In this document: one piece after another, positions 7,301-61,074 of the stretch | Position numbering within the stretch: the stretch's first letter is position 1 | Layout: each line of letters starts with the position of its first letter | From: Lepidodermella squamata | Lineage: Eukaryota; Animalia; Gastrotricha | Direction: 5' to 3' | DNA length: 64,000 bases | Assembly (NCBI GenBank): GCA_047495785.1 | Contig: JBLDXI010000012.1 | Coordinates: forward strand, 992,001-1,056,000 | Notes under the pieces: generated by a model | Told to the model about the DNA's origin: nothing | The model's input: only the letters and a program-made list of their open reading frames with translations | Databases searched by the model: none | Translations under genes and position numbers: made by a program

Positions 7301-10300
7301 GGGATGCGCTTGATTTGGCTGAAGCGTTCGCATGGGCTCGAATTGTTAAATGCATATCAGCCAGTAAATGGCACACATTCTCGCGATCAGACGCGCTCAG
7401 CCACTCCCATTCATCAGGGACCTCCTCCTCCTCGTCCTCATCTTCCTCATCAACCTCGGTGCGGAAGTGGTAATCGGCGTGTTTAACCAACTGCGCCCGG
7501 GTCCAGTGACTCAGCCAAAACACGTTAGACTGCTTGAAAATCGCCAAATAGTTGCGAACAGTCGGCCAAAACGTCGCGTCAACTCGGTTGAAAATGATGG
7601 CGAGACGCGCGTTTTCGTAGACTCGCCGCTCGAAAAACCGCCAAATCGCGTGCTTCGAATGCGCCTGCCCTACCAGCGTCGCATCAGCCCGAACCGCGTT
7701 GATGATATTCGTCTGCGCGTCAACGCCGTACAAACTCGTTAAATCAGACTGAGTGACAAAATCGCATAATTTCGCCAACAAAGTCGGGCATTGGTTGAAT
7801 TCTTCATCGCGGACGATTATCAGCATTTTCTGGTCTTTGCACCCAGCATCGAAGAAGTAGTCGGCTAGGGACGCGAGGGATTCGCTCAATTTCTCGCTGG
7901 GAGAAGCGTCTGGGGTAGATGGCGGCAGGCTTCGAATTTGAAGCCCGGCAACAGATCCGCCCAAAGTCGCGAAAAATTGAGTCCGGCCAGGGTAGCCCTC
8001 AGCAACTAGGACGACATTGCCATTCGGAGCCGATGACGCAACAATTCGAGCAAGACGGGAGATAACGCCCAAAACTTGTCGGTAGAAGAAAATTTCAATA
8101 TTCGGGTAATTTTTATTCCACTCATTCTGAGCCTCGCCCGACAGTTCGAAAACATCTTCATCCATAGCAAATTCGTGCTTGTAAAAATCGTGGAGAACGT
8201 ACTTCCGATAGCCATTCGTATGTTGGCCCATTGTCGGAATCGCAACGTTAGTCATGCCGTTTTCGTGGGTGATAATGCTGCTGAAAAGCGGGATTTCCGG
8301 CTCGAATAGCCATTCCAGGTACCGTTTGTCTGTTACGTATTTTTTCACCCGGCTAACGTACAGCTCGTCGTATTTCTGCTGATCAACGTTACTGTTGAGT
8401 TTTTGACGCAGCGTCCAGTCCAACTCATGTCGCCATAAATAGAATAGATTTGCGATATTTTGATTCGCAAGCTCAGTGTTCATCGATTGGCAGAAAAACG
8501 AGAACAGCCGCGATAGATCGTGCATAGAAAATAGGTAATGGCCTCGGGTCAAAGTTGGCACGAAGATCTTGGAAAGATCCGAAACCAGGTCGAGTGATAG
8601 AGATGTCAAGGAATTTATCACTGATTTCAACTCGCCACTTCCTTGGCCGAAATGGGCCTGAACCAGGCCGGAAAAGATGTGGAACTGTTCATCGTGCGAT
8701 GGATAGGCCAGGCTGAAGAAGAAAAACTTCCAGAGCAGGCGCTCAGAAACCACAGGAGCGGCATTTCGAGGCGTTGGATTCAAAGACAGGATGTAAGAAG
8801 TTCCTATAAAATTAGAAAAAGAAATTTAAATTAAGGTATGCCACGAATTTCAAAATTAAAATTGAAAACAAAACTAAATTGATAATCAATTTTCCAAAAT
8901 TTCAATTATTTCCATTTCAAAATTTCGATTATCTTACATTTCAAAATTTTAAATTCAAACTTTGAATATTTTAAGAAATTCGAAATCACTTGCTTTTTCC
9001 TGATTTTTATATAGAATTTGTTTACATAGTGGAACCGAATCCTGAAACTTAATTTTTCAATAATTTTATTTTTTATTGTTCAGAGAACCGCACAGAATTT
9101 CATCAATTCAATTTTTGAAAAGGATGCGTCAAATTGGAAGCCTAAATTTAGGGTTTTACAGCAATAAATTCTCCCAAAATATGGTTTTTCGAGTTTCGCA
9201 TCTTCCCTAATAGAATTTCAATTTTTATATTATCATGAGTCATCGGAAATTCTTAGTGCCAAGACACATAAAATTAGTGCTGGAATTTTACTGTTGCAAA
9301 TATTTAGACCCATTTAAAAAGGCATTTTCATGGGACTTTTAAATTTGTTTTCGCTAAAAGAGCCTATAAAAATGTACCTCTAATATAGCGCCAAGAGCAG
9401 TCGGCTGGCGTATTGAAACCCCCATCATCGATATGCTGGCGAATCAACTCCGCAGAAGTTTGAGCCGAAGTATCCGGGTCGACTCGAGCCAAATGAAGGT
9501 CATCAATGAAGCAAATCAGCCGCTTTGATCGTGGCGCATACGTTTGACCGTGCCGCCAGACCACATGACGATCAAGCGCGGAGAAAACTGCCATGCTGTC
9601 AGTTTCCTGGGTCGACGTTACAACGGCAGAGTCGAAATCACTCAACTGTGACGCGCACATTTGGTCCAATTTCGTGAGTAAAGTTCGAGTTTTCCCACAG
9701 CCATCAGTTCCAACAACTGCAATCGACGAGCCCATGTCGCAAATCAAGCTGACAAAATACGACAATTGTTCAGTTCGACGAGTTCGGATGAAACTTTCGG
9801 ACGAAATTCCGAGACCAACGGCTAAATTAGCTGTTTGGCTAGCCTCAAATCGAACAAGATCGACCTTCTCAGTGTCTGGGATCAGGTCGTCAAGATCTTT
9901 CGGGCAATCGTGGTACATAGAAACAATCCACGACAAAAATTCCTGGCGGGCGTTTTGGGTCAGGCCGCCGCCAAATGCCCAGTAAATCGCGAAATACATG
10001 CATTTCTTGAACAATTCCTCCTTACGGATATCAAGCGCATGTAAGAGACCGTCGACAATTTTCGTGAAGGACATGACAGACATCAAAATTTGCAGGTCAT
10101 TGCTCATTGGCCAGCAAGTTGCGTGGCACAGCTCGGCACGTTTATTCAACGCAGGAACGAAAATTTTGTTAAACAGCTCGAAAAATAAACGCTGGAAATC
10201 GAACGGCTTGCGTTGAATCCAATGGAATAAAATCAAAGGGACCATCGATTTTTCGCGGGTGATTGAAACCAGGGCCATCCTAGAGCAAGTTGCGGGTGAC

Positions 10301-13300
10301 AAATGCGCCAGTGAGTCGGTTTCCCAGAATACGTGGCAATTTTGCCTGGCGACATTCAACCGCCTACCGTCAACCAGGCTCGAAACGTCTTCGGTATAAA
10401 TCACATCGAGCAATTGTTCGACTAAAACTGGCGTTAAGGGCCCGTCAACTTGAAGGACTTGGTCGATTTCTTTACTAGCGTTGGCGAATATCATTTCGAA
10501 AGCTGACGGGATTAAACCGAAATGGGTCCCAGATTCGTGTCTCGCCAACTTTTTCGCATCCCCGAAAACTCGGCTGGTCTCAACTGAAGCCGGGTAGATG
10601 CTGTGAATATTCAGTGAAGTTCCCATTTGTTTCAAAGCGGCGCAGAATAACTTAATCGCCTCAGTTTTACCCGAACAGGCCGGGCCTAGGACAGTTACAA
10701 ACGGGTAATTGTGGAACATTTCAAACAACTGATCGAGTTTTTGAAGTAGAGTTGACGTCAACTCAATGCTGTAGTTCAATCGTCTCGCGGCTAAAAACAC
10801 AGCTTCGTGGAAATTCGAGCAAATCTGATTGTGGGTAATCACAGCAGAGTTGATAACCGGCAGTTTCAGGTCCAAAATCGAGAAGAACTGATCGGCGGTT
10901 CGACCGAGGGCCGACGTCATTGACTTGGCGTTTACAGCTCGAGCTGATTTTCGAGACGGGATCATTCGTGAAGAATTCCGTTCATTCGCCGACTTAACGT
11001 AATCTTCAGCGGATAAATTGAAAAACAGCGGAGTTATCGAAACCATCAATTCACTGTTTTCCCGCTCCAACTGCCCGAGTAGAACGCTTTCAATCGCTGA
11101 AACTATCGCCAATTCCTCGAATTCAGCTTCATTTGTTGCGTTCATGAGTCCTAAGATTTCGAGATCTTCGTTGGATTTGCTGGATTTTCCGAGATTTGAC
11201 AGCTTTTCGCCGGCGCTGTGACACAGGGCTGCTATCATCGAGTTACCCATGAGAGACCCAGACCCGACATCCAACATTCTAACCCCATTTTTGTCATGGG
11301 TGGTTAGATCCGTTCCCATTAATTTAGTCGCAAATTTGAGGTAAGAAACCAGTTTTTTCGCCAAAACTGTCGAGGATGAGAACCCTTCCCGAAGCAGGTA
11401 GAGTTCCGTTTGAATAACGGGGTCCGGCGGTGTTAAGGCCAAAGTTCTCAGACGATCTCGGATTGAATCAGTCAAAGGAAAGGCGGCTCTTATCGACCCA
11501 TCGAAAATTCTTTGGTTCGAGTCGGCCGTGAAGAAAATGTTGCCAATGTTCAATGGTATTTCAGCATTAGCCGGGCTCGGCTGGTCATTAATCGAAGCGA
11601 CGGCTAGGAGTTGAAGATCCGGGGTTAGACAGTGAAATTCGGAGAATAAAACCCAAGCTCCAGAAACAATTGAAGCTTGAACAATTTCAGTAATTCTAGC
11701 CGGAGTGTGATCGGCATCAGACGATAAGTTGGATCCAATTCCGAAACTGAAACCGTAAAGCATGTAGCCGAAAAGCCCGGCGATTGATTCGACGCAATTT
11801 TTGATGGAAACCCGGTCGTTGCCGAGGAAGCAAACTGGCCTATCTTTCGTAGCAACGCTCTCAAAAACAGTCGCCAACGTGAATGGAGACATGATGAAAA
11901 TCGAGTGCTGAAAACTGGCGGCGCCAACGAATTCGAACCCGTAATCAATCGAATGGCCAACTGCGCTTAATGAGACCGAATTTTTCTCCTGGTCGAAGGA
12001 AGCCTTAGGAAAAGCTTCAAATTCGAAACTTCCCCGAGTTTTGACACTCTCGTCCGAAAACAGAAGCTCCCGGAAAGAGATCAACAACGATATAATCGCT
12101 TGAAGTTTGATAGTTTCTTGGGGTAGCATCAAGGCTACGAGCGGTGCCGTATCCACTGCATCTTTAATTACAGTCGCGCTGAATTCTTCGAGGGAAGTTG
12201 ATTTCAACATCGAACTCGCAATTCTAATCAAATCTTCCAGCGCAGTTTTGAAGCCAGATTTCGACTCGGAATCATTGCCAGTCAATAGCAGGGACGTTAG
12301 CTTGATTCTCAGTGATGTTATTAAAATATCCGCTGGCATGTTGAGGATTCCATTGAAAAATTTCGATTCGGCATCGAACGCTTTTAGAGCCAGAGGAACG
12401 TGATATTTCAAAGTTTCATGAGTTTGTTTCATAATATCGCCCAGAACTTGGGTGATTTGTTGACAAGTGACCGGGGTTAAGAAGGTCAATCGGTCACCCA
12501 AATGGCCAACAAGCCCTGCAATGGCTTGGTGGTCTTCTGTCAGAATCAAACTGTTAACACTCGGCAGAAATTTGTAGATATTTGCATCTAAAAGGTCAGG
12601 ATTCAAACTTGACGAAACCATTCTGAGGCAATCAAGCGGGGCGAGTAGGGAGAGCCTTGGGAATTCAATCTGCGTCCTCGTAACATGGGCCATGAGACTT
12701 TTGATGAAACCTGTCAAGATATCTCCCATCGATTCAAGCCGGTCCAGCATATTTGGCCGGTTGCAATTTTGGAAAATATTCGGATTTTTCTCAACATGGC
12801 GCATGTGGTTGAGAAATTCTTTCGATACAACGGCGAATTTGTGCGATTCAGTTTGAAACGCGACGCGAACTTCGTCATTTGCGAAAACTTCCTGCATTTG
12901 AATGTACAGCAGCTGAACACGTTGCCATTGCCGTAGCACAGATTCGACGTGCTGCAAATTTTGCTGCCATTTTGTGACCTCGTCAACAAAACTACTAGCG
13001 AGCGGGTCGTTCAGAATTGTTTGCAGTTGCAATTGGTGATTTTCGATTTCTTCGTATAGATTTTCGAATTTCGTTATAACGACAACTGTTGTCGGCAGGT
13101 TTGCACCACGCTCGTCCGGTTTTGCTGAATTCAACGCGCTTGGTTGAGCAGTTGAAGCACTTGTAAAGCCAAGTTTTGTCTGAAAAATTAATGCAAAGCT
13201 CAGAAACAGTACTTTTAAATAGTAAATTTTTGTTAAAAAATCTATGAAATTCCGCTAGTAGGATAAGCACTAAATCACCCAAAATCAATCAATTGCTTAT

Positions 13301-16300
13301 TGTAGTTAGTAATGAAGCCAAATATTCTATAGCGAAAATCCATAAAATTGTGATTTAATCTTGAACACATTGTTAAAAAATTAATACCGTGGGCAATTGA
13401 GTAAGCTGGCCGAGGAAAAAATATTTGTATAATGTAAAAAGAGCAGAAAAATACGGAAAACATAACTTCAAAATTTTAGGAAATGAACTATTTGACCGTT
13501 TCAAGTGAAAGTAAGGTATGACGAAATTTCCGAATTTTCGCGTTGGCTCGGAAGGTCCCATTCTTTGGTTACACTGTGTCCTGAACCATACTAACAGTCT
13601 ATGTTTTAGATCTTACATCCTCCTCAATATAAGGTAGATAACCCCTGATTGCCAAAAAGTCCCAAAGTTTAGCACAATTTTAAAGAAATGTTCATGTCTC
13701 TTGTCTCTTTAAGATTCCTCATTTCTTAATACCCCACAGATAATAATCGGCTTATTATGAAATGATACGAAAATATGCTATTCGGCAGATTAGAAGTGGG
13801 CGCAAAAAATGAAAAATTGGGGCGCACTTTCCATTTTATAGAGCTTGTTTCTCAAAAACCCTAACGGCTTTGAGCCTTTGACGCTCATTGATCTTGACAG
13901 CGGCGCCAAAAAGAAATGTCGCCAAACCTCACTTTTCACTTGTTAATGGTCGTTTTGATTTTACTAAAACAGAAGAGCTACGAATAAATCAACTAAAAAT
14001 CTAGCACTAATAAATGATTCATTGAAAAAAACTTGAGACTTACATCAGCTCCATCGCTTCTGTCATCGATCGCAATGTCGATTGTCATGCCACGAGCTGA
14101 TTCCGCGCCGCCATTCATTGTCGCCGTGCCTCGCCTTCTGCCATCGCTCGCATCCATTCGATTCGGCCGACGAATATTGCGCAGTTTCGACTCGAACAGC
14201 TTGCCAAACCAAATTTCTTCCAGCGCCTTCAACGACTTCTCAATTTTAAGATCTTTATCAGCCCGTTGAACGATGTGATAAACATCTCCGGTGTTGTTTT
14301 GCAAGCCAAGATCTAGCATTTGGCCGAAAGTTGACGTTCGAATTGAGTCGGAATCCATAAAAACTGCCGAGTTGATAGCTCTCAGCAGTTGTTTCCAGTG
14401 ACGAGCTCGCATCGCTGGGTTAGAAACGCTTTCTAACAGCGGGACGTATTCATCAACGATTTTCGCGTTTGCCTCGCTGCTTTTGACAATCGCCCAATCA
14501 CGAGCTTCAACAGGCAGCAGTTGCATGCGTTTAATTTCACCCGCGACATCCTCGCGTAATTTCGCGAAATTCATGCGAATCCACGGCTGATTGCACCAGT
14601 CGCGATATTTGTTCGAAAATGCAGCAACGCATTGCCAGACACGTTCTAGTACGACCAATCGCTTTTTCGCCCGGCTGATCAAGTCAAAATCAACGACAGA
14701 TGCTTCGACAAAGTTCTGCAATTCTTTTAAATCCTGGGCAGTGTCTTCGATTTCTCGCAGTTGGCGATTGAAATTTTCGATTTGCTCGAAAGCGACTTCG
14801 AAAGTAACTTCATCGTCCTCCGCATACAAATTCGCTGTTTCAATTTTGGTCCATAACTCGCCGAGGAATCGATTGAACTCCTTCAACTCATTCGTAACTT
14901 TGACGATATGAGTTTGAATTTTCGGGGCCAACTTTTGTTTAGCGAGAGAAACTTTGGTTTTAACAGCATTCCAGCGACTCGGCGACGAAGTAAATTGGGC
15001 CTGGTGATTTCCGGGTAGGCCATGGCCGTAGCGCTGAATCATACCAACAGCTCGTTGTAGAACGGGGAATTTCGACTCAACTTCGGTTTGCTTCTTCTGA
15101 ATTTGGTTGACCAAGTTCATGAGAGTTTTGTAGGATTTGAAGTCATTTTCATTCAACTGGTCAATTTTAGCTTCGACATCGTCCAAAAATTCTCGAAGCG
15201 CGTCGACAAACGTGACGGTATGGTCGATCAAATAACGAGCGTAGACGTAGATTGATTTCGAGGCTAGGACTATCAAAGAATCGCGGATTGGGCGAATATC
15301 GAGGCGGATGAAGCCGCAATCGTGGAAATCTGGCATTGAATTCAACTCATCGACCATCGCTTTGTAAGCGCTCATTTCTACATCGAAATCGTCCAAGGTC
15401 GGGAGATTAGGCCCGATGACGTTATTACCGCCGTGGCCAACACGATGGCGAGTAAGGCTTATCACTGTTCTAGTTTCCGAGGCAGCAGTCATCTCCCGAG
15501 AGACATCGCCCTGATCCGGTTTCCTCTCTTCCCCGCGATGGCCAGCAGCAGGCGTGTTGGGAGCACTGTTTTCGCCCTTGGATTGATTTCGGCTGGGGCT
15601 CTTGCCAGATTTTCCGGCGTTTTTACCACTTTCGATGAATTCTTCAAAAACTCTAGCAACATCTTGCTCCCACAGCCTAGTGAAGCCCTCGAAAATCGGC
15701 AAAACTTGTTTGCAAGTCGCGACTGAAACATCGATGACTGACCAAATTTTCGAGAGAATCCCCTGAATTTCGGTGTCTTGCCGGAGTAACACGTCAAAAT
15801 GGCGATCGTCGTCACTGGAGGCTGTTATGAAAGCAACATGCCGCGACGTGCTGAAACAAGCGTCCAGCCAATCGGCCAACGTTTCGCTCAAACACTTCTT
15901 ATTCATAGATTTATCGAGGGGCGGAATGAACATCAAGGTATTCTGGGTTAGCATCAGTTCGATAGTAAGGAAAGGTGGGTCGTAAGTATCGGCCGATACC
16001 GATGTCATAATTTCCTGTTCCTCGACCAGGCGAAGCGCCCCACATCGGCGAAAATTCTCAACCAAACAAATCAGATTATAAGTGCAGAGGCGAAGTAAAT
16101 TGTCTAAAACAATCGTGTTGATACTTTCAGTACAAGCAACCCAAGCTGGGGAAACGCGACTTATTTGGACACAACCGAAAATGGTTTCAACTGTTGACTG
16201 AATCCTCTGGCCGAGGGGATGCAAACAATCCTGAGCTCGGATTTGAAGTTTCTCCGAGCAGTCTTCGAGTGTTAGCATTCTCCGCTCTTCCCATGTCAGG

Positions 16301-19300
16301 GATTCTAGCTCCTCAACACCTGGGGCAAACACAGTCAAAGGTAAACCGTTCCAAATTTTCGTTGTTTGGACAATTTCCACAATGCAAGTGCGAACTGTGA
16401 GCACCCTTTGCCACAAATCACTGCTCAAATTAGTTGACAGGGAAATTATGTAATCGCCGAGTCGTTCCATGTTCCAGCAAACAGTCGTGCAGCCTTCATC
16501 AACCAGTTGATGAGCGTTGGCGAAACTATCGTTGAATAAATTCATTTCCAATTCGGTAGCATCACAGAAAATCGCGTTGTAAGTCCCAGCTATGACATGT
16601 AATCGAGTAGCGGCTGAGAACACACGTTGCCAATCGACAGCTTTCACAACGGTTGGCAACTGAATATCAGAATTTTCAGGTGATTTCGAGAGGCAAACAA
16701 GTTCGCGTAATAAGACTGATTGCTCAGTTGAAATGTTGATGGAAAGAGATGACCTCGTTCTGTTACCATCAGATTCAATTTTCTCAAGATAAACAGGTTG
16801 TTTAAGGTGTTCAACCAGAGCTTCAACAACTCGATCAGTCCAATGCTTGCTAGCATCGGGGTAGAATCGTTCGATATCGGCTAATACTTCGCGATAAGCG
16901 TCGCGAATGTGCCAACCTTCCTCGTCCTCGAAAATGAAGGGGCAGACACGTTGAGTCAGCTCGAAAACCCCGACTAGGCGATCTTTCAACGCTTGGGCCC
17001 ATCTGAGAGTCGAAACAAAGCTTGGAACATTGCGCTGATGCGGTATCATTCCAGGCGTTTTGGTACCTGCATTGAATGTGCGGCGAGTTGACGCTATTTC
17101 GTCTTTCAAACCTTCAGTGATAGCGCTGAATTCGTCAATCAACGCATCTCTAATACGTTTTCGACTGCTGACGTTGCCGAATATTTCGGTGAAACACAGA
17201 CGTGATGACAAGGTAAAAGTTTGCCGGTAGCCAGCTCGCATGATCGCCACTAGTTTATCCTCCAATTCCATCACAACGAGTCGCAATTTGTAGAAAGCCC
17301 TCTCAAATGGCCTGCTGCAGTCGATATCCAATACGTTAGGTACGCTAGCGAAGAATTCGCTTGTTGCAGCAATGTAAGCCGCGAAAACATCAGCGACAAG
17401 TGCGTCGAGCGATGCTGAGCCTGTCCCACCCAAATCCGCCAAATCGGACAGCCGCCTGAAATGATCGGTCGTTTGTACTAACTCAAGCAAATCATTGCAG
17501 CGCTCCATAAAAGCATTCATGTAATCAAAACATGGAGCGTTTCTTGGAGGCCAAGGGCTATATTGAGCAAGTGGTTCAATCATCGTCATGACTTTCAATC
17601 CTCTCGGATTAGATGATCGAAACTCGAATTGTCCGAATAATTTGGTGTGGAATAAATTATCGTTTCTTGGTTGATGAGCCAATTTTTCCGCATTTTCCCG
17701 TCGCCTCTGATCATTTATGGCGTCGGCTTTCGCTTTCCAGTCGAGATAAGCCCCGCGAAAAGACGCACAGATTCGCAGCGCATCCCTCAACATGTCGTGA
17801 GATTTCTCGGGATTGTTTATAACGTCTTTGGTCTCCGCTCCAACAAATGCTTGTGCAATCTGCACAATGAAGTTCGCAGTTTCTTGCAATAATCCAAGAA
17901 ACGGTTTGGTTTGGTGATAGTACACGGAAGTTTTCCACATCAACAGGACGGTGTGCACAAGAGCAGGAATATTTGCGCAAATTTGGGTAGCATCCATTTG
18001 CTGAACAAAGCCTCGCAGTTTCTTGCAGCATTTATCCAAAGTGGTGAGGAGAATCAAGTTTTCCTGTGTTTCTTGAGCCGCACTTTGTAGCTCATCCAGG
18101 ATTTGTTTACGGTTCATGGCATAGGCGCTGCCACTCTGCTGAAGCATCTCGAATACTTCTAGAACTGGTTCAGACGCAAAATGATCTATAACCCTTTCCA
18201 AATCACGCAAATGGTGCTGAACCGTTGCCAGTTCATCGCCGATAGTTGGATGCTTGTATAGTTGAGAAACTGCCTTGACGACGTCAAAGCCCAATATAGT
18301 CTAGAAATGACAAAACAAAAAAATTACCAAGGAAGGGGTAACTAGGCGCTATAAATAGCACGCCACTTAAAGTCAAGTAAACCAGCAAAAATATATGAAT
18401 TCTGCAGCTTATTCTACGCAGCTATAACAATTCGAAATAGGTCGTTTTAAGAATAGCTAACATAGAGGCTACATTACCATCAATCGGCGCTGGGACTGTT
18501 TTAAATGTTGCAACATAATATATAACTTAACGTGTAGATGGTTGACGACATACCTTCACATGCTTGTTCCAATTAACCACTAGTGATTCCAAAATGTGGA
18601 CAAATCCAGGACGGCTTGTACCAGCGTCGAGCTGCCATTGCTTCAAGAGGTCGGTATTAGGTTTCGCCAAAACAGCTTTGTTCTGTAAGTAATGTCATCA
18701 AGTTTTACGAAGCCTCTGCTGTTTTAATGGCCTTCGAACCTGAACTTGGCCCTCGGTAACTTGAATTGCGGATGAAAGTTTGAGAAACTGCTCGAAAACT
18801 TTGTCTCCGACCGCCGGATTTTGCTCTCGATGAGATCGAAACTCTGCACTGAATACCGGTAGAAAGACATTGTCAACCAAGAAATTTGAATGACGCAGTA
18901 AGCTCGAAGTTGTTTCAATAATTGACACGCAGTGGTCTGCAAAATATCATATAATTAATAAGTTGACAACTTTCTGGGAGTTTCTCACCAATGCTCTCTA
19001 AGGTAGGAACAGCATTAGCGGGTTGTTTCACGAATGTAATCAATTTTCCATTGAATACTGCAGGTGGTGCCGGTGATGCAAACAGTGATTTGGCCCCATC
19101 ATAGCCGACGAAAAGTTCAGATACCTTATCTGAGTTTAGGAACTGAGTGATTGAAATCCTTAAGAAAAAGGCATCAACGATAAAATATTCATTTGAGATG
19201 AAATTACCGATTTTGCTCTTTGGCCAGTAGCAGCTTAAGCTCATCTGACTTCGGTTTCAAACTCAGAACAACTTTACCGTTAATCCATTGGTATCTCCCA

Positions 19301-42793: not shown

Positions 42794-45700
42794 TTAGGTT
42801 TCTTCCGGCCTGTCTCGCGTTAGGTATGCGAGACGATATTTTTCGCCATAGTGAATGCCGTCGCACCTTACGCAGTTAAGGTATAGGCCTGCGACGTATG
42901 ACGTAGATCGGTGTTTGAACTCCGGGCGAGCATGAATTGTCGCCACGCGATTCGCCTCCACGAAAGTGAGCTTTTCGAGCGCCCCTTCTCCTAGCCGTCT
43001 GTAGTCTATCCTGGCCCCGGTTGGTACGCACTTCTTGCAGTGATCATCTTCCGACTGAGCTGATTTTAGATTCTCCTGCGTGATTTTCATCTCTTCTGGC
43101 AATACGAGGTAAATCTTGCCACGTGGGGCTTTCTGGTTATTCTGCTTCCTACGTCTCTTCTTATTCCACTCCTCGACCTTAGGAACTACGTTCTCGCTCT
43201 TTTTCTCTGCTGCGGCTACTTTCTGGTCCTTTTTATCGAACTTCTCATTGAAAAGGAGCAATTTGGCGTCCTTCTGGGCTTGTTTAACTGGGTCATCGAA
43301 GTAGTGAGGTAACCTAGATAAACAATCTGGACCGGCCAAAAGTCTCCCAGGTTTGTGTATAATTGAGAAATTGAACAATGAAGCGTAACGAGCAATCCGC
43401 CCTAGCTTGCTGAAGCTATCTTTGTGTGTTAGCAGCGTGGTATTTGCTGCGTGGTCCGTAACTAGGTCAAAGTCTGTGCCTGGAGGTGTCGTTGGAGTTG
43501 ATAGTTCTTTCATCTTCAGATATGGAGAGAAAAATTTCAATGCTACTCCTATTCCGATTGCCTCTCGAACAGTTGTCGATTCGCCTTTTTCTGCCTTAGT
43601 TAAAGGTCGGGAGAAAAACCCAATGACCTTAATTTGTGACTTGCCGTTTTTGTCGTGCTGGCGCTGCATGAGACATGCTCCAATGCCTACGCCTGACGCA
43701 TCTACCTCCAAAATAAATCGGTCTTTCGGGTTTTTGTATGTTGGGTACCCTAGCACCGCTGGGCTGAGTAGCGCTTCTTTTACGTCTTGAAATGCTTTGT
43801 CCTCTTCTGGCCCCCACCTGAACTCCTTATTTTTGGAAGTTAGCTTGTTAAGTGGGGCTGCGAGAATTGCGAAGTTTTTGCAAAATTTGGAGTAATATGT
43901 TGCGAAGCCCATGAAAGTTCGAAGTGATGAGTGGTCCGTGGGTCTCGGCCAATCTTTTACGGCTGAAAGCTTCTCCATATTAGGGAGGACGCCCTGCGTA
44001 CTGATAATTACGCCCGCGAAGAGCGTCTTCTCGACCCCGAGCTTTGCTTTCGATTGTGAAAGCCTCAAATTACTACGGCGGATGCATTGTAAGAACTCCT
44101 CGAAACGATCTAGGCCATCGTCAAAGCTGTGACCCCACACCAACGTGTCATCTACGAACGCCATGAATTGACGTAGGTTTTTCGTTATGTACGACATCAA
44201 ACGGCAAAATCCGCTAGGACTACACCGAAGTCCTTGCGGACTGCGGGTATAACAAAGGGACTTGAGGGTATTGTTGTGCGTCTTGACGGAGAACGCCGTG
44301 ATGGGCTTGCTCTCCTCGTCCAACAGGACCGAGTGGAACGCGTCGTGAATGTCGTTAGCAAACACGGCGGCGATGGGCCCCATGTCGCTGTAGTCGAGCG
44401 GCAGCTGATGCACGCTCGGCAGCGTGATATTTTGGTTAATTTTCCTAAAATCGACCGTGAACCTGAGCCGCCCGTTGTTAGCGCGTCTGACGAGCACGAC
44501 CGGGCTGTTGAACGGTGATACGCATTCTTCTATCACGCCTTGTTTCAGCATCTTTTCGGTCTGTTCTAGGATTAGCGCGTTCTGATCTGGTTGGACCCTC
44601 CTGTATGGGACACTCACTGGTGGGCCGTGATAGTCGATGCGGTGCCGCATGGCATCGCATTTTCCGACATCGTCCGGACCTTTACTGTAACAATCGTGAT
44701 ATTCAATCAACAGTGACTTCAATCTTTCGAGATGTCTGCCGGTGAGGATGGTCTGTGATAGATCAATATCTGGCAGTAACTGTTTTAATTTCGCGTCTTT
44801 TTCTGCTGAAGTCATTTTATCCGCTGCTAAATGGCCAACGAACACATTTCCCCCTTTTTCGCGTTTTCCGCTTAAACGCTCGGTGCTCTCATCGTCGCTG
44901 AGCGCCGCGCCTATATGCGCTATAGAATCAGCGGCGTTGGTGCATGTTGCTATTTTTCGCCCTTCACGAATGGTTACGCTTTGTTGCCCTAAATTAATCA
45001 TCTGCACTGGCACAAAGCCGTTATGCGCGTAGCCAATTGAATGGCCTACTGCGATGAGATCTTTCGCATCATACGTATTATTTGGTTCAACATAAACAAG
45101 CGTGCCGTCGGGGATTGAGCCGCCGACGCGAGCGAAGATGAATGCGTTCGCGCACGCCGGCAAAATTAAATCTTCAGCTGCACTAATGGCAAAACACGCG
45201 CTTTCTTTCGCCGGTGCTTTCGGTGCAGAATTTTCAAGTGCAATTTTCTCGCCATTTTTCATCTGTATGAAACTGTCCTGCCACTGAGTATTATTTACGT
45301 GGCTACGAATGAAATCAGAACCGATAAGACCATCAACCTGAAGATTTTGAACGAAAGTAACAGGGTGGACTATCGAACTCGAACCTATCCTCATAGCGAC
45401 CTCCGCTCTGCCGACAACTGGTAATGGCGTGCCGTCAGGTCCTTTTGCTGATGCTGGCTGAATAATAGAACCTTTAGGCAAAAATTTGGCGTCGGCGCAT
45501 GTTATTGTCGCGCCGCTATCAAAGAGAAATGTTTGAAATTTTGAATTTTGAGACAGTTTGACAGAATTTTGAGAGAAATTGTTCTGTGGATTAATCGAGA
45601 CTTTTAAACCGTAACCTCCTGGGTCAATTCGGCCCACCATTGGAGGCTCCTCAATGTTTTGTTGGTGATTTTCAGTTTCAGTTTCAGTTTGGTGACCCAT

Positions 45701-46005
45701 TTTTTGCGATTCTTGATAATTTTCGGATTTTAAACGCAAATCCTGGAGTGAATTTGGCTGAAATTTGTCGTTATTTGCGGGTGATTCGAAATTCGGATTT
45801 GGCTTCTGATCTGAATTTTTAGGTACAAACTGGTTGACTGAGTTATATGAATGACAATTCTGGTGCTGAATGTTACAATTTCCGCAGCAACTATTTATTT
45901 GCTGCGCGCCGCTGCAGGCCTGTTCGCGCCTGCAAGGGCAATTTGAAGTTGAATTTTTGGGTTTTACGGCCGGCCGCCGCGCTGGGCCGGCCAGTTGGCG
46001 TTTCC
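42794..46005 (-). CDS. pol: Pol polyprotein (aspartic protease, RT, RNase H; no integrase), expressed by -1 frameshift from gag
   Basis: Protease FLFDSGAT; RT SPFNSPVVLV..RFTVDFRKIN, DIHDAF, SPQGL and FVDD; RNase H LEVDASGVGIGACL, REAIGI, TDH and HKPG..GPDCLSR. The frame is open upstream to the slippery site at 46000-46006. Confidence 0.9.
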
Positions 46006-47100
46006 CTGTCGCGTGGTTGGCAAGTAGCTTTGACTTTCTAAATCTCGCTGCCTTTTACGACATTCACGCTTGAAGTGACCGGGTTTTTGACAATAGAAAC
46101 AACAATTGTTGTCAGGGGAGGAGTTAGAGTTATCAATGTTTTTATTTGAGTTTTCATACCTCTGTTGCTGTGCAAACCTGCCCCCGCCTCGGCCTCCTCT
46201 CGAGCCGTTGGATCGGCCTTGGAAGTTCCGCTGCCCTTGGCTATTGGGCTGTTGATGCGGTGTATACTGCTGGAACTGCTGTTGCTGTTGGTATGGCCTG
46301 CTGTACGCTGACTGCGGGCGACCTCGGCCGCCTCGCCATGAGCCTCGCCCATTTTCGGCTCGAAGATTGGCGACCATTTCGCCTACGCTGTTGACGTGGT
46401 CACACATTTCATCTAGGCGCTTACTATGTTGGTCGAGAGCTGCACGGACATCCATGATCGCATTAACGGTTGCCCCTTCGCGGCTCTTTGTTATCTTTTC
46501 TTCCTCGACTGCGCGTTTAAGAACTTCGGCGCTGACCACATCGGCGGTTCCGCCTCGCTGTGCGGCTTCGCGCAGATGAGTTCGGAGGCCCGAGATAAAC
46601 TGCAGCTTTAGCTGTTTATCAAATCCCTCGGCGTTCGCCGCCGTAACTTGTGTTAACAGTCGCCTGATTCGGCTGTAGAAGTCTCGTACTGATTCGGTTG
46701 GCTGTTGAAACGCTGACCTAATTTGCAAACTTGCTTCGATTTCGGACGGCTTTAGGCCTGCCAGGTCCGCTAGCGCTGCTTTGGCTTCGGGAAGTGATCG
46801 AATGGTCGCTCGATCGGCGGTTTCCCAGAGATCCCTTAGCTTACGATCGAGCACACATGGTAATGACCGAATGGCATCGGCCTCCTTAACGGGCGGTTTA
46901 AGCCCCGCGGCCCTTGCCGCTTCGGCAGCCTCGGCCTCCGCTGCCGCTAGTGTCGTTCCGGCTGCGAGTTTCGCCGGATCGATGGCCCCATGTGCCCTGG
47001 CCACCGCTATGTAGGCATCGAAGCCATCGTCGAATGCTTCGGCCGAATCCGATGAAATGATCCTTGTGATTGGCGTGAATAACCGGCCTAGTTCTGCCAT
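45964..47100 (-). CDS. gag: Gag protein with CCHC zinc knuckle
   Basis: 378-aa ORF with a QQPTESVRDF major-homology-like motif, FISGL, and a CFYCQKPGHFKREC knuckle. Confidence 0.9.
   Translation of the reverse strand: MAELGRLFTPITRIISSDSAEAFDDGFDAYIAVARAHGAIDPAKLAAGTTLAAAEAEAAEAARAAGLKPPVKEADAIRSLPCVLDRKLRDLWETADRATIRSLPEAKAALADLAGLKPSEIEASLQIRSAFQQPTESVRDFYSRIRRLLTQVTAANAEGFDKQLKLQFISGLRTHLREAAQRGGTADVVSAEVLKRAVEEEKITKSREGATVNAIMDVRAALDQHSKRLDEMCDHVNSVGEMVANLRAENGRGSWRGGRGRPQSAYSRPYQQQQQFQQYTPHQQPNSQGQRNFQGRSNGSRGGRGGGRFAQQQRYENSNKNIDNSNSSPDNNCCFYCQKPGHFKRECRKRQRDLESQSYLPTTRQGNANWPAQRGGRP
45968..46006 (-). promoter_or_regulatory. Programmed -1 ribosomal frameshift signal
   Basis: G_GGA_AAC heptamer in the gag frame, a 7-nt spacer, then an 8-bp GGCCGGCC/GGCCGGCC stem. 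Pol is in the -1 frame and open from this point. Confidence 0.8.
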
Positions 47101-54623: not shown

Positions 54624-55766
54624 TCAGTAAGTTAACATTTTCGCGATGAAAATACCAGATGAAGCTAAGATGACTAGAGCACAGAAAGAGAAGCACGCCA
54701 AATCGCTGATATTCAGGGTTTTAGTCAGAAATAGTTTCCTGTCCTGCTTGCGACATTTCTTTATCAAGTTATTACAGATGTAGCAAGAAATTGAGGAGTA
54801 AACCGTGATGACAGTCGCAATGCCGAGTTGAATGGTGAATATAATGGAAATGTAGCTCAACTGAGAAGTTGTTGGCATTTTGTCGTCTATGTTTGTTTGA
54901 AGAACCCCCAGCGCTAGTTGACAAGTTATAGCATATGCCGACCGGTCTGGGGCACTAGCCGGAATACCGAAGGCGGCTAATTGCAGCGTCATCAGAAAAG
55001 CCATTGGAATTATTGCTATGTAAATGAACTGTAACGGGCGGCGTCTGAGCGTGATGCTGAAATGGGCTGCATCGTCAAAAGAACCGCATTTCGGTCTGAG
55101 CATCACCCCACTGCCAGTCACATACCACTGCGAGCTTTCCGAAGTGAATTCGACTTGCTTCGATGGAATACCAACCTTGATAGCTAAATTGCCGAATGTG
55201 ACGTCAAAGCATGAATCCAAGTGGCCGAATTTGAAAATGCAAGTCTGCTCATCGAAAGGAAAGTGGAGAAAGTCAAGCGGGCAAACTGTTGAAATTGCTG
55301 GCACAGGCGGATAGAATACGACAGTCCCATTACGCAGCGCGAATACCGTTTCGAGCTCTTTTTCGTATTTCACCGTTGCATAAATGTCTTCGGGGTTGTT
55401 CATATGCAGAAGCCCAGGTACCCAGTTGCTTTGCGGGGTCATAATCAGCTGTTTGACATCTTCGAACTCGCTGATGTTATCCCAGTTGACGAGCGGGTCA
55501 TGCCATTCGACTCGTAAATCGGGCAAAACAGTGAGTGTTTCGCCTTTCTCATCCAATGAAATAAAACTCAAAGCTCGAAAAGTCAAGTTTAGCGATATCA
55601 CATCCCGTTCATTCAATTTTGGCGGGTCGCGTTCTGTAATGTGGGCGCTGTCCCGTCGTTGTTGCATGAGCGATTGAAGCCTTGAACTGCTCCAGTTTGG
55701 ATTTCGAGCAAAAGCACATTCCGAATAAATAAAGAGAGCAAAAGCAAGTCTCAAGCAAAGATCCAT
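54624..55766 (-). CDS. Intronless Cys-loop ligand-gated ion channel subunit (divergent nAChR/5-HT3-like)
   Basis: Signal peptide; WHDP; WVPGL; Cys-loop CPLDFLHFPFDEQTC; pre-M1 LRRRP; four hydrophobic helices; KMPTTS M2-M3 linker; very short M3-M4 loop. Confidence 0.9.
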   Translation of the reverse strand: MDLCLRLAFALFIYSECAFARNPNWSSSRLQSLMQQRRDSAHITERDPPKLNERDVISLNLTFRALSFISLDEKGETLTVLPDLRVEWHDPLVNWDNISEFEDVKQLIMTPQSNWVPGLLHMNNPEDIYATVKYEKELETVFALRNGTVVFYPPVPAISTVCPLDFLHFPFDEQTCIFKFGHLDSCFDVTFGNLAIKVGIPSKQVEFTSESSQWYVTGSGVMLRPKCGSFDDAAHFSITLRRRPLQFIYIAIIPMAFLMTLQLAAFGIPASAPDRSAYAITCQLALGVLQTNIDDKMPTTSQLSYISIIFTIQLGIATVITVYSSISCYICNNLIKKCRKQDRKLFLTKTLNISDLACFSFCALVILASSGIFIAKMLTY

Positions 55767-57833: not shown

Positions 57834-58259
57834 TGATTTCGCGGTTGGCGAAGTTATCGATGGCGGGTTTTTTCGTAGTAAATAAAACACATAACCATTT
57901 GAAAAAATGTTCGACTCTTGGTTAAGAAAATTATCAAGTAATATTGTGTTTACTCAGAAAACAGAAGATGCCTTCCCGCATTGTTCTCGCCATAGATATA
58001 ATTTCAAATTTCAAATTTCAAAATTTCTCAGACATATCAAACTCAAACACAAACAGGTGTGGCGCGAGAGTGGTGTGATAAGCACGCGACGAGCTTGTTT
58101 TTTACGACATAAATGCCATCGATTTAGGTAAGTGCAAGGGTTTCCAGGTTGAATCAACCAGGTTGAAAATTGGAACAAAACAAGCTCGCGATTTCGGTAA
58201 AAAGATGAGCACGTGGAAAATTAAATGGAGTTGCATAACAGCCCAACCTATTGGCTTAT

Positions 58260-58817
58260 CAATCAATCAATCAATTTATTTGCAAACTTCGTTCACAGGA
58301 CTAGAAGGGCACGCAGGCCTCTTACACTAACCCGATGCAATAAGATTTCCTTTACAATATTTCTTCAAATTCACGCGGTACAGATTTCGTTTTACGATAT
58401 TGTTCTTTATATCAGCAGGTAAATTATCGTCAAAGTTAAATACGGTAGTCGGCAATCGATTCCAAGTGTTTACAGTACGGTTCAAAAAATAGTTCTTATA
58501 AATAGGTTTGGTGGGATTTTTGCACTTCATATTCGGATTTAAAACAGAGAAGCGAAAACGATGACCTCGATTGTTATTCAACAAAAATTTTATATTATTA
58601 GAGATAGATGTTTTAACAGACCCATTAATTATTTTGAAAAGGAAGCAAAGATCGTATATAAGGCGCCGTTCTTCGAGAGACACTAGCCGAAATTTTTTTA
58701 GACGCTCGGAATAGGACGGACGCGAAGGATCGTAGGGTGATAAATTAAGAGCACGGCGAGTAAAGTAAGATTGCAATTTTTCTAATTTGTCAATTTCATT
58801 TTTAAACCAAGGTATAA
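58260..58817 (-). mobile_element. 5'-truncated CR1-like LINE
   Basis: PWFKNEIDKLEKLQSYFTRR..SYSERLKKFRLVSLEERRLIYDLCFLFKI..RGH..FLNRTVNTWNRLP. It ends in AATAAA plus an (ATTG)n tail, with a possible TSD GCTTAT. Confidence 0.85.
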
Positions 58818-58820
58818 GCT

Positions 58821-58828
58821 TATATAAA
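58821..58828 (+). promoter_or_regulatory. TATA box of the secreted Gly/Arg-rich protein gene
   Basis: TATATAAA lies about 90 nt upstream of the ATG at 58911. Confidence 0.5.
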
Positions 58829-58910
58829 CCCCGCTCGGCAAATTAATTTTCAACAAGCCCAAGCTGTATTCTCAATTTATATCAAGTGAATATATTTTTT
58901 GAAATCAAAC

Positions 58911-59575
58911 ATGCGTGCTATTTTGGTTGTGGCTGTTGTCGCCCTCTTCTGCATCGGTAATGTCCTGAAATGCGAACCCTACTTTCAAAAATTTCCATTC
59001 ATTTAGTCGCCACCTCGGCGAACCTCGGAAAGCGTGGACGTGGCGGCAATAATGTCTCCGCCTCGGTGAACAAGCGCTCGGCCTCCGCCTCGGCTGGTGA
59101 CAACCGTCGTGGTGGTCGCTTCTTCGGCCACAAGGGTCGTCGCGGCAACTTCGCCTCTGCCTCGGTCAACCGCCGCTCCGCCTCGGCTGCTGCCGGCAAC
59201 AACCGTGGCCGTCGCGGCTTCTTCGGTCGCCGTCGCGGTGGCAACTACGCCTCGGCCTCCGTCAACAAGAACTCCGCCTCGGCGAATGCTGGTGACAACC
59301 GTGGTCGCCGTGGTCACTTCTTCGGCCGCCATGGCTCCCGCTCGTCCGTCTCTGGTTCCTTCTACGGCCGTCGCCACGGACGCGGTTTCTCTGGCCGTCG
59401 CTTCGGTCGCCGCGGTTTCGGATACGGCCGTCACGGTTACGGTCGTCGTGGATTCTACGGCCGTGGTCGCCATGGCTACGGCTACGGTCGTTTCGGCCAC
59501 CGTGGCTACTATGGCAGCGGTTCATCCTCGTCCGGCGACTTCTACGGCCGTCGCAATGGCTGGTACTGGAATTAA
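58911..59575 (+). CDS. Secreted Gly/Arg-rich repeat protein (204 aa, 2 exons)
   Basis: Exons 58911-58956 and 59007-59575; signal peptide MRAILVVAVVALFCIVATSA; three SASVNxxSASAxAGxNR..FFG repeats followed by a GR/GY-rich tail; strong codon bias. Confidence 0.85.
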
Positions 59576-59721
59576 GCGTACTCGCGAAAGAACTTGCTCA
59601 AATGTCGACTTTGCGTCGAAATGTTAAATCTATTTATTCAGAGGGTTGCAAATAAGATCAAGATCATAAGATAAAAGATAACAAATTTCTCTCCACAATT
59701 AGATACTTTTTTATCCAAAAA

Positions 59722-60804
59722 ATGCGAACTGTCTTGGTTTTGGCAATCATCGCTCTGGGCTGCATTGGTAAGTCTTCACCTTATCCTAGTCGTCCAAATT
59801 TATAATATTTATTTTTCTTAGCCCTCAGCTCAGCTGGCGGCTACGGTGGCCGCGGTTATGGCAAAGGCAAGGGTGGTCGCAAGCAGGCCTCTTTCTCGGC
59901 CTCGGTCGCTCATCGTGACACCTACGACCGCAAGGCCGCCAAGGCTCAGCAAGAATCTGCTGCCGTCGACTACGCCTCGGCCGATGCTTCCCACAACGCG
60001 CGAACCAGCGACAAGCGCAAGCTGATCAAGGAACGATCGGCCAGCCACGAACGCGCCTCGGCCAACTACGAATCCGCTGGCAAGCGCGACTCTGTCTACG
60101 ACCAGAAGAAGTCCAAGGCCGGCAGCAAGCGCCGTGGTCGCAAGATCCGTGAAAGCGCCTCGGCCGCCTTCGCCAAGCACGACAACGCCTACGCCGACTC
60201 TGGCGCCGCTGCTGCTGCCCAGAAGTACCGCCGCAACAAGAAGCACGGCCGTGCCGACCGCAAGCGCAAGGCTGCTTTCCACAAGGACCAGGCTCATGAC
60301 AAGAAGGGCGAAGCGATCGAGTTCAAGAAGAAGACCTTCGCCGACAAAGGCCACAACAAGATCAACAAGTTTAGCTACGAATCCGCCTCCAATGACTTTG
60401 GTGCCTACGACTCCACCGGCGCTGCCACCACTGCCAGCCGCAAGAACACCGCCAAGAAGGCCCATGGCAAGAAGGCTCGCCAGGCCCACTCTGCTGCCTA
60501 CGCTTCCCGCGACTCGCAGGCCTCGGCCGCGGCTGCCTCGAAGAAGGCGAAGCGCAACAAGGCCCACCAACGCCGCGCCTCGGCCTCCGCCACCCGTGCT
60601 GCCCACAACGCCCGTGACTACAAGGCCAGCAGCAAGAAGACCTCCGTCTCGGACTCTGCCCACACCCGCAAAGCTGGAGCCAAGTACGGCCGAAAACGCG
60701 CCAATGCCTCGGCTGAACGCGCCACCCACGACTTCCGCAAATCTGTCTCCGCCGGCTATCGCGATGGTCGCTATGGTGGTCGCCACGGCGGTTACTACTA
60801 CTGA
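59722..60804 (+). CDS. Secreted Ala/Lys/Ser/Arg-rich basic protein (342 aa, 2 exons), absent from the ORF track
   Basis: Exons 59722-59767 and 59822-60804; signal peptide MRTVLVLAIIALGCIALSSA; exon 2 is open for 983 nt (GGYGGRGYGKGK...GRHGGYYY-stop); extreme C/G third-position bias; AATAAA near 60896. Confidence 0.88.
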
Positions 60805-61074
60805 AAACTGATTCAAGTTTATTCGTGAGCTTTTCGCCGCACTGCAGAGATGATGTTGAATTATTTTTCAAATAATCACCGAAATGTCCATTCGAAATAA
60901 AGAACATGAAGTTTTCATCCTCAATTGTTTGCTATTAACATTAATTACAGTATGGGGCTTAAATATTGAGCCGACTTCATTTATTCACAGCGCAGTCATT
61001 TCGGCTCCGATTCTCACAAATCTCATACCGTTGGAATGTTCATGAGAAATGGTTTATTCCCCTAAACTTTCGCT

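Follow-up and report, generated by a model that had tools for sequence, protein, structure and literature searches.

A dispersed copy of an amplified two-gene cassette for putative secreted polycations in the gastrotrich Lepidodermella squamata

The subject of this study is a pair of adjacent genes, called here g1 and g2, at positions 58,911 to 60,804 of a stretch of 64,000 nucleotides from the gastrotrich Lepidodermella squamata (assembly GCA_047495785.1, contig JBLDXI010000012.1, written C12:992001-1056000 in our coordinates). This whole stretch is called the window; the genome that was searched comprises 121.2 Mb in 151 contigs. As read from the sequence, g1 and g2 are intact, real-looking genes for two polycations with predicted signal peptides. 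An earlier reading of the window, to which we refer as the original prediction, had described them as a tandem pair: the pair itself stands, but it is not unique, being a dispersed member of a cassette family with at least 20 copies in the genome. The interpretation that we favor, and to which we give slightly less than an even chance, is that the gastrotrich makes a two-component bulk extracellular material from g1 and g2, most likely the eggshell or the body cuticle or scales, the two chains being supplied in matched amounts by a cassette copied at least 20 times. It is favored because the amplified cassette, its high-expression codons, its Cys-free and predicted-secreted chains, their conserved aromatic ends, and the strict pairing of two unrelated chains all point the same way.

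The two genes lie on one strand and follow an identical plan: a signal exon of 46 nucleotides, a phase-1 intron with GT..AG boundaries, and a single large exon. The models, which were treated exon by exon in searches, folding and signal-peptide assessment, are the following.

58911-58956, plus strand: g1 exon 1, 46 nucleotides, or 15 signal-peptide codons and one nucleotide; conserved among paralogs
58957-59006, plus strand: g1 intron, 50 nucleotides, phase 1, GTAATG..TTTAG; the introns of paralogs are 49-61 nucleotides long and diverged, with their boundaries kept
59007-59575, plus strand: g1 exon 2, 188 amino acids; Ala/Ser modules, Gly/Arg/Phe linkers, tail, tip GDFYGRRNGWYWN, stop codon TAA
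59576-59721, plus strand: g1-g2 spacer, 146 nucleotides; AATAAG at 59651-59656, acceptor-like TTAG at 59699-59702, 19 nucleotides before the ATG of g2
59722-59767, plus strand: g2 exon 1, 46 nucleotides, putative signal peptide
59768-59821, plus strand: g2 intron, 54 nucleotides, phase 1, GTAAGT..CTTAG
59822-60804, plus strand: g2 exon 2, 326 amino acids; Gly/Tyr/Lys-rich start, core of 290 residues rich in Ala/Lys/Arg/Ser, tail GRYGGRHGGYYY, stop codon TGA
60896-60901, plus strand: poly(A) signal AATAAA of g2, read from the sequence

In both genes, reading through the intron runs into a stop codon. The signal exons encode the peptides MRAILVVAVVALFCI in g1 and MRTVLVLAIIALGCI in g2, identical at 9 of 15 residues and at 32 of 46 nucleotides; each has a charged start followed by a hydrophobic run, as in a signal peptide, and each exon 2 begins with a small-residue cleavage motif, ATSA/N in g1 and LSSA/G in g2. 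The original prediction had listed most of these traits, namely the 46-nucleotide signal exon with its phase-1 intron, the similar signal peptides, the SASA-type motifs, and the aromatic ends WYWN of g1 and GGYYY of g2, and all of them are indeed found. It had further taken the two mature chains for paralogs, a claim that we could not confirm and set aside: BLASTP returns an E-value of 27, hhalign a probability of 0.5%, and detectable similarity is confined to the signal exon.

The extent of the amplification is as follows. The genome holds at least 29 g2-like exons, with 67-100% identity to that of the window, and 13 near-full g1-like exons, with 83-100% identity, besides many longer g1-type genes. 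Of these g2-like genes, 20 have a g1-like gene directly upstream, on the same strand and 235-530 nucleotides away; the other nine stand solo or beside other lysine-rich neighbors. The copies are concentrated in about 1.15 Mb, at C3:2.47-3.62 Mb, with two at C1:1.34 Mb, and the pair of the window is the sole copy on C12, where it is surrounded by housekeeping genes.

Nearly all paralogs share the same exon/intron plan, with fixed splice boundaries and the range of intron lengths given above. In ten cassettes that were compared, conservation reaches 80-99% in the exons and 45-65% in introns and spacer, and drops to background in the flanks. The median pairwise ratio of nonsynonymous to synonymous substitution rates (dN/dS) among paralogs is 0.26 for g1 and 0.35 for g2; for changes private to the window copy, which include 12 amino-acid changes in g2, it is 0.22 and 0.45, respectively. 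A plan kept in nearly all paralogs, exons conserved over introns and flanks, and ratios well below 1 amount to more than a chance pattern and, as judged from the sequences, the paralogs are under purifying selection.

The count of copies has to be read with the origin of the assembly in mind, which was made from DNA amplified by multiple displacement amplification (MDA) (PMC11660948). This procedure can produce chimeric or inverted reads, and some of the copies that are identical or inverted, a few at most, may have arisen in this way. Examples are L018/L019 and an inverted pair at C3:3262940 and C3:3279303 (intervals 3262940-3264969, plus strand, and 3278074-3280103, minus strand, about 13 kb apart); the copies within such pairs have identical scores. 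They could be duplications, very recent or inverted ones, or else chimeras due to MDA.

The two chains have extreme compositions. The exon-2 chain of g1 contains 24% Gly, 20% Arg and 13% Ser, has an isoelectric point of 12.0 and a net charge of +38, and is devoid of Cys, Glu, Ile, Met, Pro and Gln. That of g2 contains 21% Ala, 14% Lys, 12% Ser and 10% Arg, has an isoelectric point of 10.5 and a net charge of +50, and is devoid of Cys, Met, Pro and Trp. The original prediction of mature chains lacking Met, Cys and Pro, and rich in Arg and/or Lys, thus agrees with the counts, and so does the strong codon bias that it reported: the effective number of codons is 33.9 for g1 and 30.6 for g2, while the dynein and receptor genes in the window have values of 53-61. 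Both genes favor the codons that an EF1a gene of this genome prefers, among them GAA for Glu, which ends in A; the bias consequently has the look of translational selection and not of local GC content or of drift at third codon positions. From this match in codon use and from the number of copies, we infer that g1 and g2 are highly expressed.

The sequence of g1 is modular. It contains three units of 32-33 residues, each made of a linker rich in Gly/Arg/Phe followed by the motif N-x-ASASVNKxSASAxAG; then come a region of about 85 residues rich in Gly/Arg/Tyr/Phe/His and the conserved tip GDFYGRRNGW(Y/F)W(N/H). Long variants of g1 carry about 8-12 Ala/Ser modules, and long variants of g2 gain a KKGG-rich tail. 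In g2, the core is of fixed length: about 290 alignment columns without a single indel across 14 paralogs at 76-83% identity, with both ends varying in length, which suggests a length-constrained middle and flexible ends. Almost all g2 paralogs terminate in (G/H)YY(Y), and 8 of the 18 Tyr of g2 are invariant.

AlphaFold2, given the alignment of paralogs, renders g2 as three long helices (residues 27-107, 112-162 and 200-313) with a predicted local distance difference test score (pLDDT) of 47.6, and gives g1 no secondary structure, with a score of 42.2; neither is a usable model. No period from 2 to 12 residues stands above shuffles in g2, including the 11-residue period of late embryogenesis abundant (LEA) proteins. 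Residues 112-162 alone display a possible period near 7, and no period of 3.5 or 7 extends over the whole core. A coiled-coil silk, of the type made by aculeate Hymenoptera and mantis, which has a long heptad-repeat coiled coil at its center and an Ala-rich core, was considered for g2 and rejected: the core shows no heptad periodicity above shuffles, and the helices are predicted only at the score given above. Taking composition and predictions together, we infer that g1 would be a disordered block copolymer of Ala/Ser modules and Gly/Arg/aromatic blocks, and g2 a helix-prone core of fixed length with Gly/Tyr/Lys ends.

The architecture of g1 recalls that of the suckerins of squid sucker ring teeth, in which, behind a signal peptide, beta-prone modules of the Ala/Ser/His type likewise alternate with Gly/aromatic modules (10.1101/2020.08.10.244673; PMC9999432). 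The number of modules also varies in a suckerin-like manner, from three in g1 to the 8-12 or so of its long paralogs. This likeness is architectural only. Unlike suckerins, g1 has Gly blocks that are Arg-rich and strongly cationic, it has an obligatory and unrelated partner gene, and AlphaFold2 gives it no structure; no homology was detected, and Pfam, word searches, the PDB and the Atlas yielded no hit for g1.

More generally, no relatives of either chain came to light. Pfam has no domain in g1 or g2, and for g2 no match at all up to an E-value of 10, LEA_4 included, in keeping with the original prediction, which had recognized no domain. Word-index protein searches found no relatives of g2, of g1 or of one of the long g1 variants, PDB sequence searches nothing for g1 or g2, the ESM Atlas no match to either chain, and a scan of metagenome contigs no relative. 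The original prediction had suggested profile searches: a profile of 14 g2 paralogs, run against 1.84 billion representative proteins, retrieved no relatives. At the level of sequence, the cassette proteins are without detectable relatives outside this genome.

The region before g1 bears on how the pair is transcribed. Its features are the following.

57995-58259, plus strand: upstream promoter region common with C3 cassettes (blastn against L016/L017, 79-86% identity)
58230-58240, plus strand: conserved element GTTGCATAACA, about 120 nucleotides before the ATG in other copies
58260-58817, minus strand: mobile-element insertion, 554 bp (58260-58813) and 4 nucleotides, with a (CAAT)n end
58821-58828, plus strand: TATA box of g1, TATATAAA, read from the sequence; TATA or TATTTAAG-type boxes align in paralogs
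58850-58857, plus strand: initiator-like TCAACAAG; CATCA(A/G), about 30 nucleotides after TATA, is aligned in paralogs

Across cassettes, the order before g1 is GTTGCAYAACA, then a TATA box 14-24 nucleotides on, then the initiator-like CATCA(A/G) about 30 nucleotides further. The pattern of motif and TATA box occurs at 8 sites of the genome, six of them g1 promoters, and the control has 0. A genome-wide regulon defined by this pattern was looked for, and the attempt told little about co-regulated genes, the strict pattern being almost confined to the cassette family. The only two sites outside the family that have TTGCATAACA followed, at a spacing like that of promoters, by a TATA-type box are C19:2342674-2342704 (minus strand) and C43:52480-52514 (minus strand).

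The spacer between g1 and g2 has no TATA box and initiator of the type found before g1 or before solo g2 genes. It has instead, in 10 of 10 cassettes, an acceptor-like pyrimidine-rich TTAG about 19-30 nucleotides before the ATG of g2, in a sequence that is otherwise 45-65% conserved. An AATAAA or ATAAAG about 90 nucleotides past the g2 stop codon is aligned in most cassettes, and no canonical poly(A) signal is conserved after g1 among those aligned. Solo g2 genes have their own promoter, with motif, TATA box and initiator, directly upstream, and are without the acceptor-like site. A promoter only before g1, a TTAG before g2, a poly(A) signal conserved only after g2, and the pattern of solo g2 genes fit a single transcription unit with trans-splicing: from its sequence, the cassette may be an operon of two genes whose transcript is separated by spliced-leader trans-splicing. 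A pyrimidine tract of the acceptor-like kind, ending in AG, also precedes the start codon of g1 (58870-58886).

In the window copy, this promoter is interrupted. Homology to the C3 promoters spans 57995-58259 and resumes at 58818, and the other cassettes are uninterrupted at this point. The insert is bordered by GCTTAT on both sides (58254-58259 and 58818-58823), probably a target duplication of 6 bp. Copies of the 554-bp element on C42, C20, C28 and C19 are 98-100% identical, with the same ends, the one on C42 being 100% identical; the element was therefore active very recently. Its position directly 5' of the TATA box leaves the conserved upstream element about 680 nucleotides from the ATG, versus about 120 elsewhere. 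An open reading frame of 149 amino acids on the minus strand of the insert has no Pfam match, and the insert is established only as a discrete dispersed repeat.

How would the two proteins make a material? A single transcript would start from the promoter before g1, and g2 would be freed by 3' end formation and by spliced-leader trans-splicing at the conserved TTAG, an arrangement that would fix a 1:1 ratio of g1 to g2. Signal peptides would be cleaved, probably after TSA in g1 and after SSA in g2. Mature g1, of about 170 residues, would be a disordered block copolymer whose beta-prone Ala/Ser modules alternate with Gly/Arg/Phe linkers, and its Gly/Arg/Tyr/Phe/His region may stick through cation-pi and pi-pi contacts; mature g2, of about 320 residues, would be a helix-prone Ala/Lys/Arg/Ser spacer of fixed length with Gly/Tyr ends. 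Once secreted, the two may condense, possibly with polyanionic partners, and harden through tyrosine cross-links made by a heme peroxidase.

On this last step, the original prediction had offered two kinds of cross-linking, through dityrosine and through 3,4-dihydroxyphenylalanine (DOPA). Candidate heme peroxidase loci are present in the genome, and no match to tyrosinase (PF00264) was detected in it, a blank that does not prove absence; dityrosine curing is thus the more plausible of the two. The same prediction had spoken of highly expressed, paralogous gland products: the codons are EF1a-like, a secreted bulk material would explain the pair most economically, and the mature chains are not detectably paralogous.

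The complete chain, in which a head-to-tail unit, transcribed once, trans-spliced and copied about 20 times, gives equal amounts of two polycations that are cross-linked through tyrosine into gastrotrich eggshell or scales, seems to us unlikely to hold in every link. If it did, it would provide a molecular component of an extracellular material for the first time in gastrotrichs, an operon-based means to fix the stoichiometry of a biomaterial, and a clean test case for animal operons that set subunit ratios.

The closest organizational precedent for the cassettes is that of the silkmoth chorion genes (PMC4639761). These are also multi-copy pairs for two chains, spread over about 1 Mb and duplicating together; their minor first exon of about 50 nucleotides, followed by a major exon, parallels the 46-nucleotide exon 1 of g1 and g2; and in both kinds of arrays the gene regions are conserved while the flanks decay (PMC4639761). 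There are differences, too. In the silkmoth pairs, the two genes face away from a bidirectional promoter that they share, in head-to-head orientation; g1 follows a different plan, with g2 placed head to tail behind it on the same strand after a spacer of 146 nucleotides. The chorion proteins are rich in Gly/Cys/Tyr and are not polycationic, in contrast to the Cys-free polycations studied here. The sequences themselves have no similarity, and Pfam, word searches and the g2 profile revealed no chorion domain or relative.

Several observations weigh against a bulk material built from g1 and g2. The heme peroxidase loci are on other contigs, unlinked to the cluster. The helix model of g2 is of low confidence (pLDDT 47.6), and Fourier analysis of g2 detects no amphipathic or heptad periodicity above shuffles. 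The MDA assembly may include artefact copies. The fresh insertion between upstream element and TATA box means that the window copy may be weakly expressed. The family is also missing from a collection of proteins drawn in part from assembled public sequencing runs, so that the case for high expression is one of codon use and copy number; if the genes prove poorly expressed, they will be a caution against reading expression from such data. Finally, the sequence does not separate eggshell, cuticle and glue. Our literature searches turned up no molecular work on the cuticle, scales, eggshell or glue of gastrotrichs. If the genes do supply such a material, they would offer first handles for probes, antibodies and knock-downs, and the family would be a new Cys-free, cationic and tyrosine-tipped two-component protein material, of interest for bio-inspired coacervates and adhesives.

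The glue itself deserves attention. The pair might be the temporary-adhesion secretion of the caudal adhesive tubes, a cationic couple that binds negative surfaces or the glycocalyx and is released by an anionic factor. We think this unlikely, in spite of some suggestive parallels. Both chains are predicted-secreted polycations without Cys, and the Gly/Arg/Tyr/Trp tail of g1 resembles in composition the adhesive chemistry of the mussel mfp-3 type, which counts for adhesion. Mussel mfp-3 and mfp-5 and the cement polycations of the sandcastle worm are small, basic, secreted and Cys-free proteins, rich in Gly, Tyr, Arg or Lys, Asn and Trp, that condense and cure extracellularly. These systems depend on DOPA made by tyrosinase, and no tyrosinase was detected in the gastrotrich genome for chemistry of this kind; nor do their proteins have any sequence similarity to g1 or g2. 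Moreover, a chaetonotid has only two adhesive tubes, and some 20-29 copies with optimal codons suggest a demand for protein far larger than two tubes would create.

Gastrotrichs do attach by adhesive tubes (PMC11660948), and the flatworm protein Mlig-ap1, for which release by an anionic factor has been proposed, acts through Lys/Arg-rich regions and is likewise without database homologues (PMC6410801). Like g1 and g2, it is a secreted orphan with very high Lys/Arg content, and it comes from a small aquatic duo-gland animal of a phylum thought to be related. However, Mlig-ap1 is a giant cohesive protein of the adhesive gland, whose KR regions exceed 3,600 residues and flank lectin and vWF domains (PMC6410801), whereas g1 and g2 are multi-copy genes for small, Tyr-tipped chains in which Pfam has no domain. 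Neither chain has the domains of lectin, vWF or thrombospondin type that flatworm adhesive proteins carry.

A different kind of doubt concerns the window copy alone, and is compatible with any reading of the family: the copy could be a silenced or dying duplicate that lost its normal regulation through the insertion in its promoter. Upstream element and TATA box are separated by a mobile element 100% identical to the one on C42, and the cassette stands alone on C12, amid housekeeping genes. Yet its reading frames, splice sites, TATA box and codon bias are all intact, and among its private changes synonymous ones exceed nonsynonymous ones per site (0.22 and 0.45, as given above). We regard such a loss as distinctly unlikely, with the reservation that, after so recent an insertion, no decay could be expected to show yet in either case.

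Less probable still is a role in defense, in which g1 and g2 would be antimicrobial polycations of epidermis or gut, analogous to the Gly-rich antimicrobial peptides found in arthropods and nematodes. The composition of known cationic peptides of this Gly-rich class is similar, a point that counts for this reading together with the very high net charge, the tail of g1 rich in Gly/Arg/Tyr/His/Phe, and the multi-copy tandem gene families. But a typical peptide of this sort, which infection induces, has fewer than about 100 residues, against about 170 and 320 here; the core of g2 is of fixed length; and strict pairing with full-length conservation (dN/dS 0.26-0.35) suits a material better than an arms-race effector.

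Two further proposals, each about a single chain, we hold to be very improbable. In the first, g1 would be a multi-copy peptide precursor like those of neuropeptides or prohormones, in which conserved dibasic sites bracket conserved peptides, and would be cut at dibasic sites into Gly/Phe or Ala/Ser peptides, some of them amidated; there are 14 overlapping dibasic sites in g1, 10 of them preceded by Gly, but the intra-module site is not conserved across modules and paralogs (NKR, NKN, NKK, NKQ, NRR), the Ala/Ser module stays constant while linkers change in length and sequence, the predicted products have inconsistent ends, and g2 has no repeat structure. In the second, as poorly placed as the first, g2 would be a secreted LEA-like protectant of resting eggs or cuticle against drying or freezing, as its richness in Ala/Lys/Ser/Asp, its lack of Cys and Trp, and its low-confidence long helices, typical of conditionally folding hydrophilins, might suggest; it has neither an LEA_4 (PF02987) or other Pfam match up to an E-value of 10 nor an 11-residue periodicity above shuffles, and its tyrosine-rich ends and obligatory g1 partner would be left unexplained.

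The C3 region that holds most cassettes has other contents. Between 2.47 and 3.62 Mb (loci L028-L034), it also carries more diverged g2-like genes, at 29-33% identity, of which one is more acidic, along with further lysine-rich open reading frames that look secreted; genes with Sushi/CCP repeats lie between its cassettes.

Three other features of the window were identified. An axonemal-type dynein heavy chain gene occupies 1378-18294 on the minus strand, with exons of up to 1,433 codons, and such very long exons imply a genome that is poor in introns. At 42794-47100, on the minus strand, lies a pair of open reading frames similar to those of long terminal repeat retroelements: a Gag with a zinc knuckle, and a Pol with dUTPase, reverse transcriptase and RNase H. 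An apparently single-exon gene for a Cys-loop receptor of 380 amino acids, with a ligand-binding domain and hydrophobic segments, is found at 54624-55766 on the minus strand, 3 kb upstream of the g1-g2 cassette.

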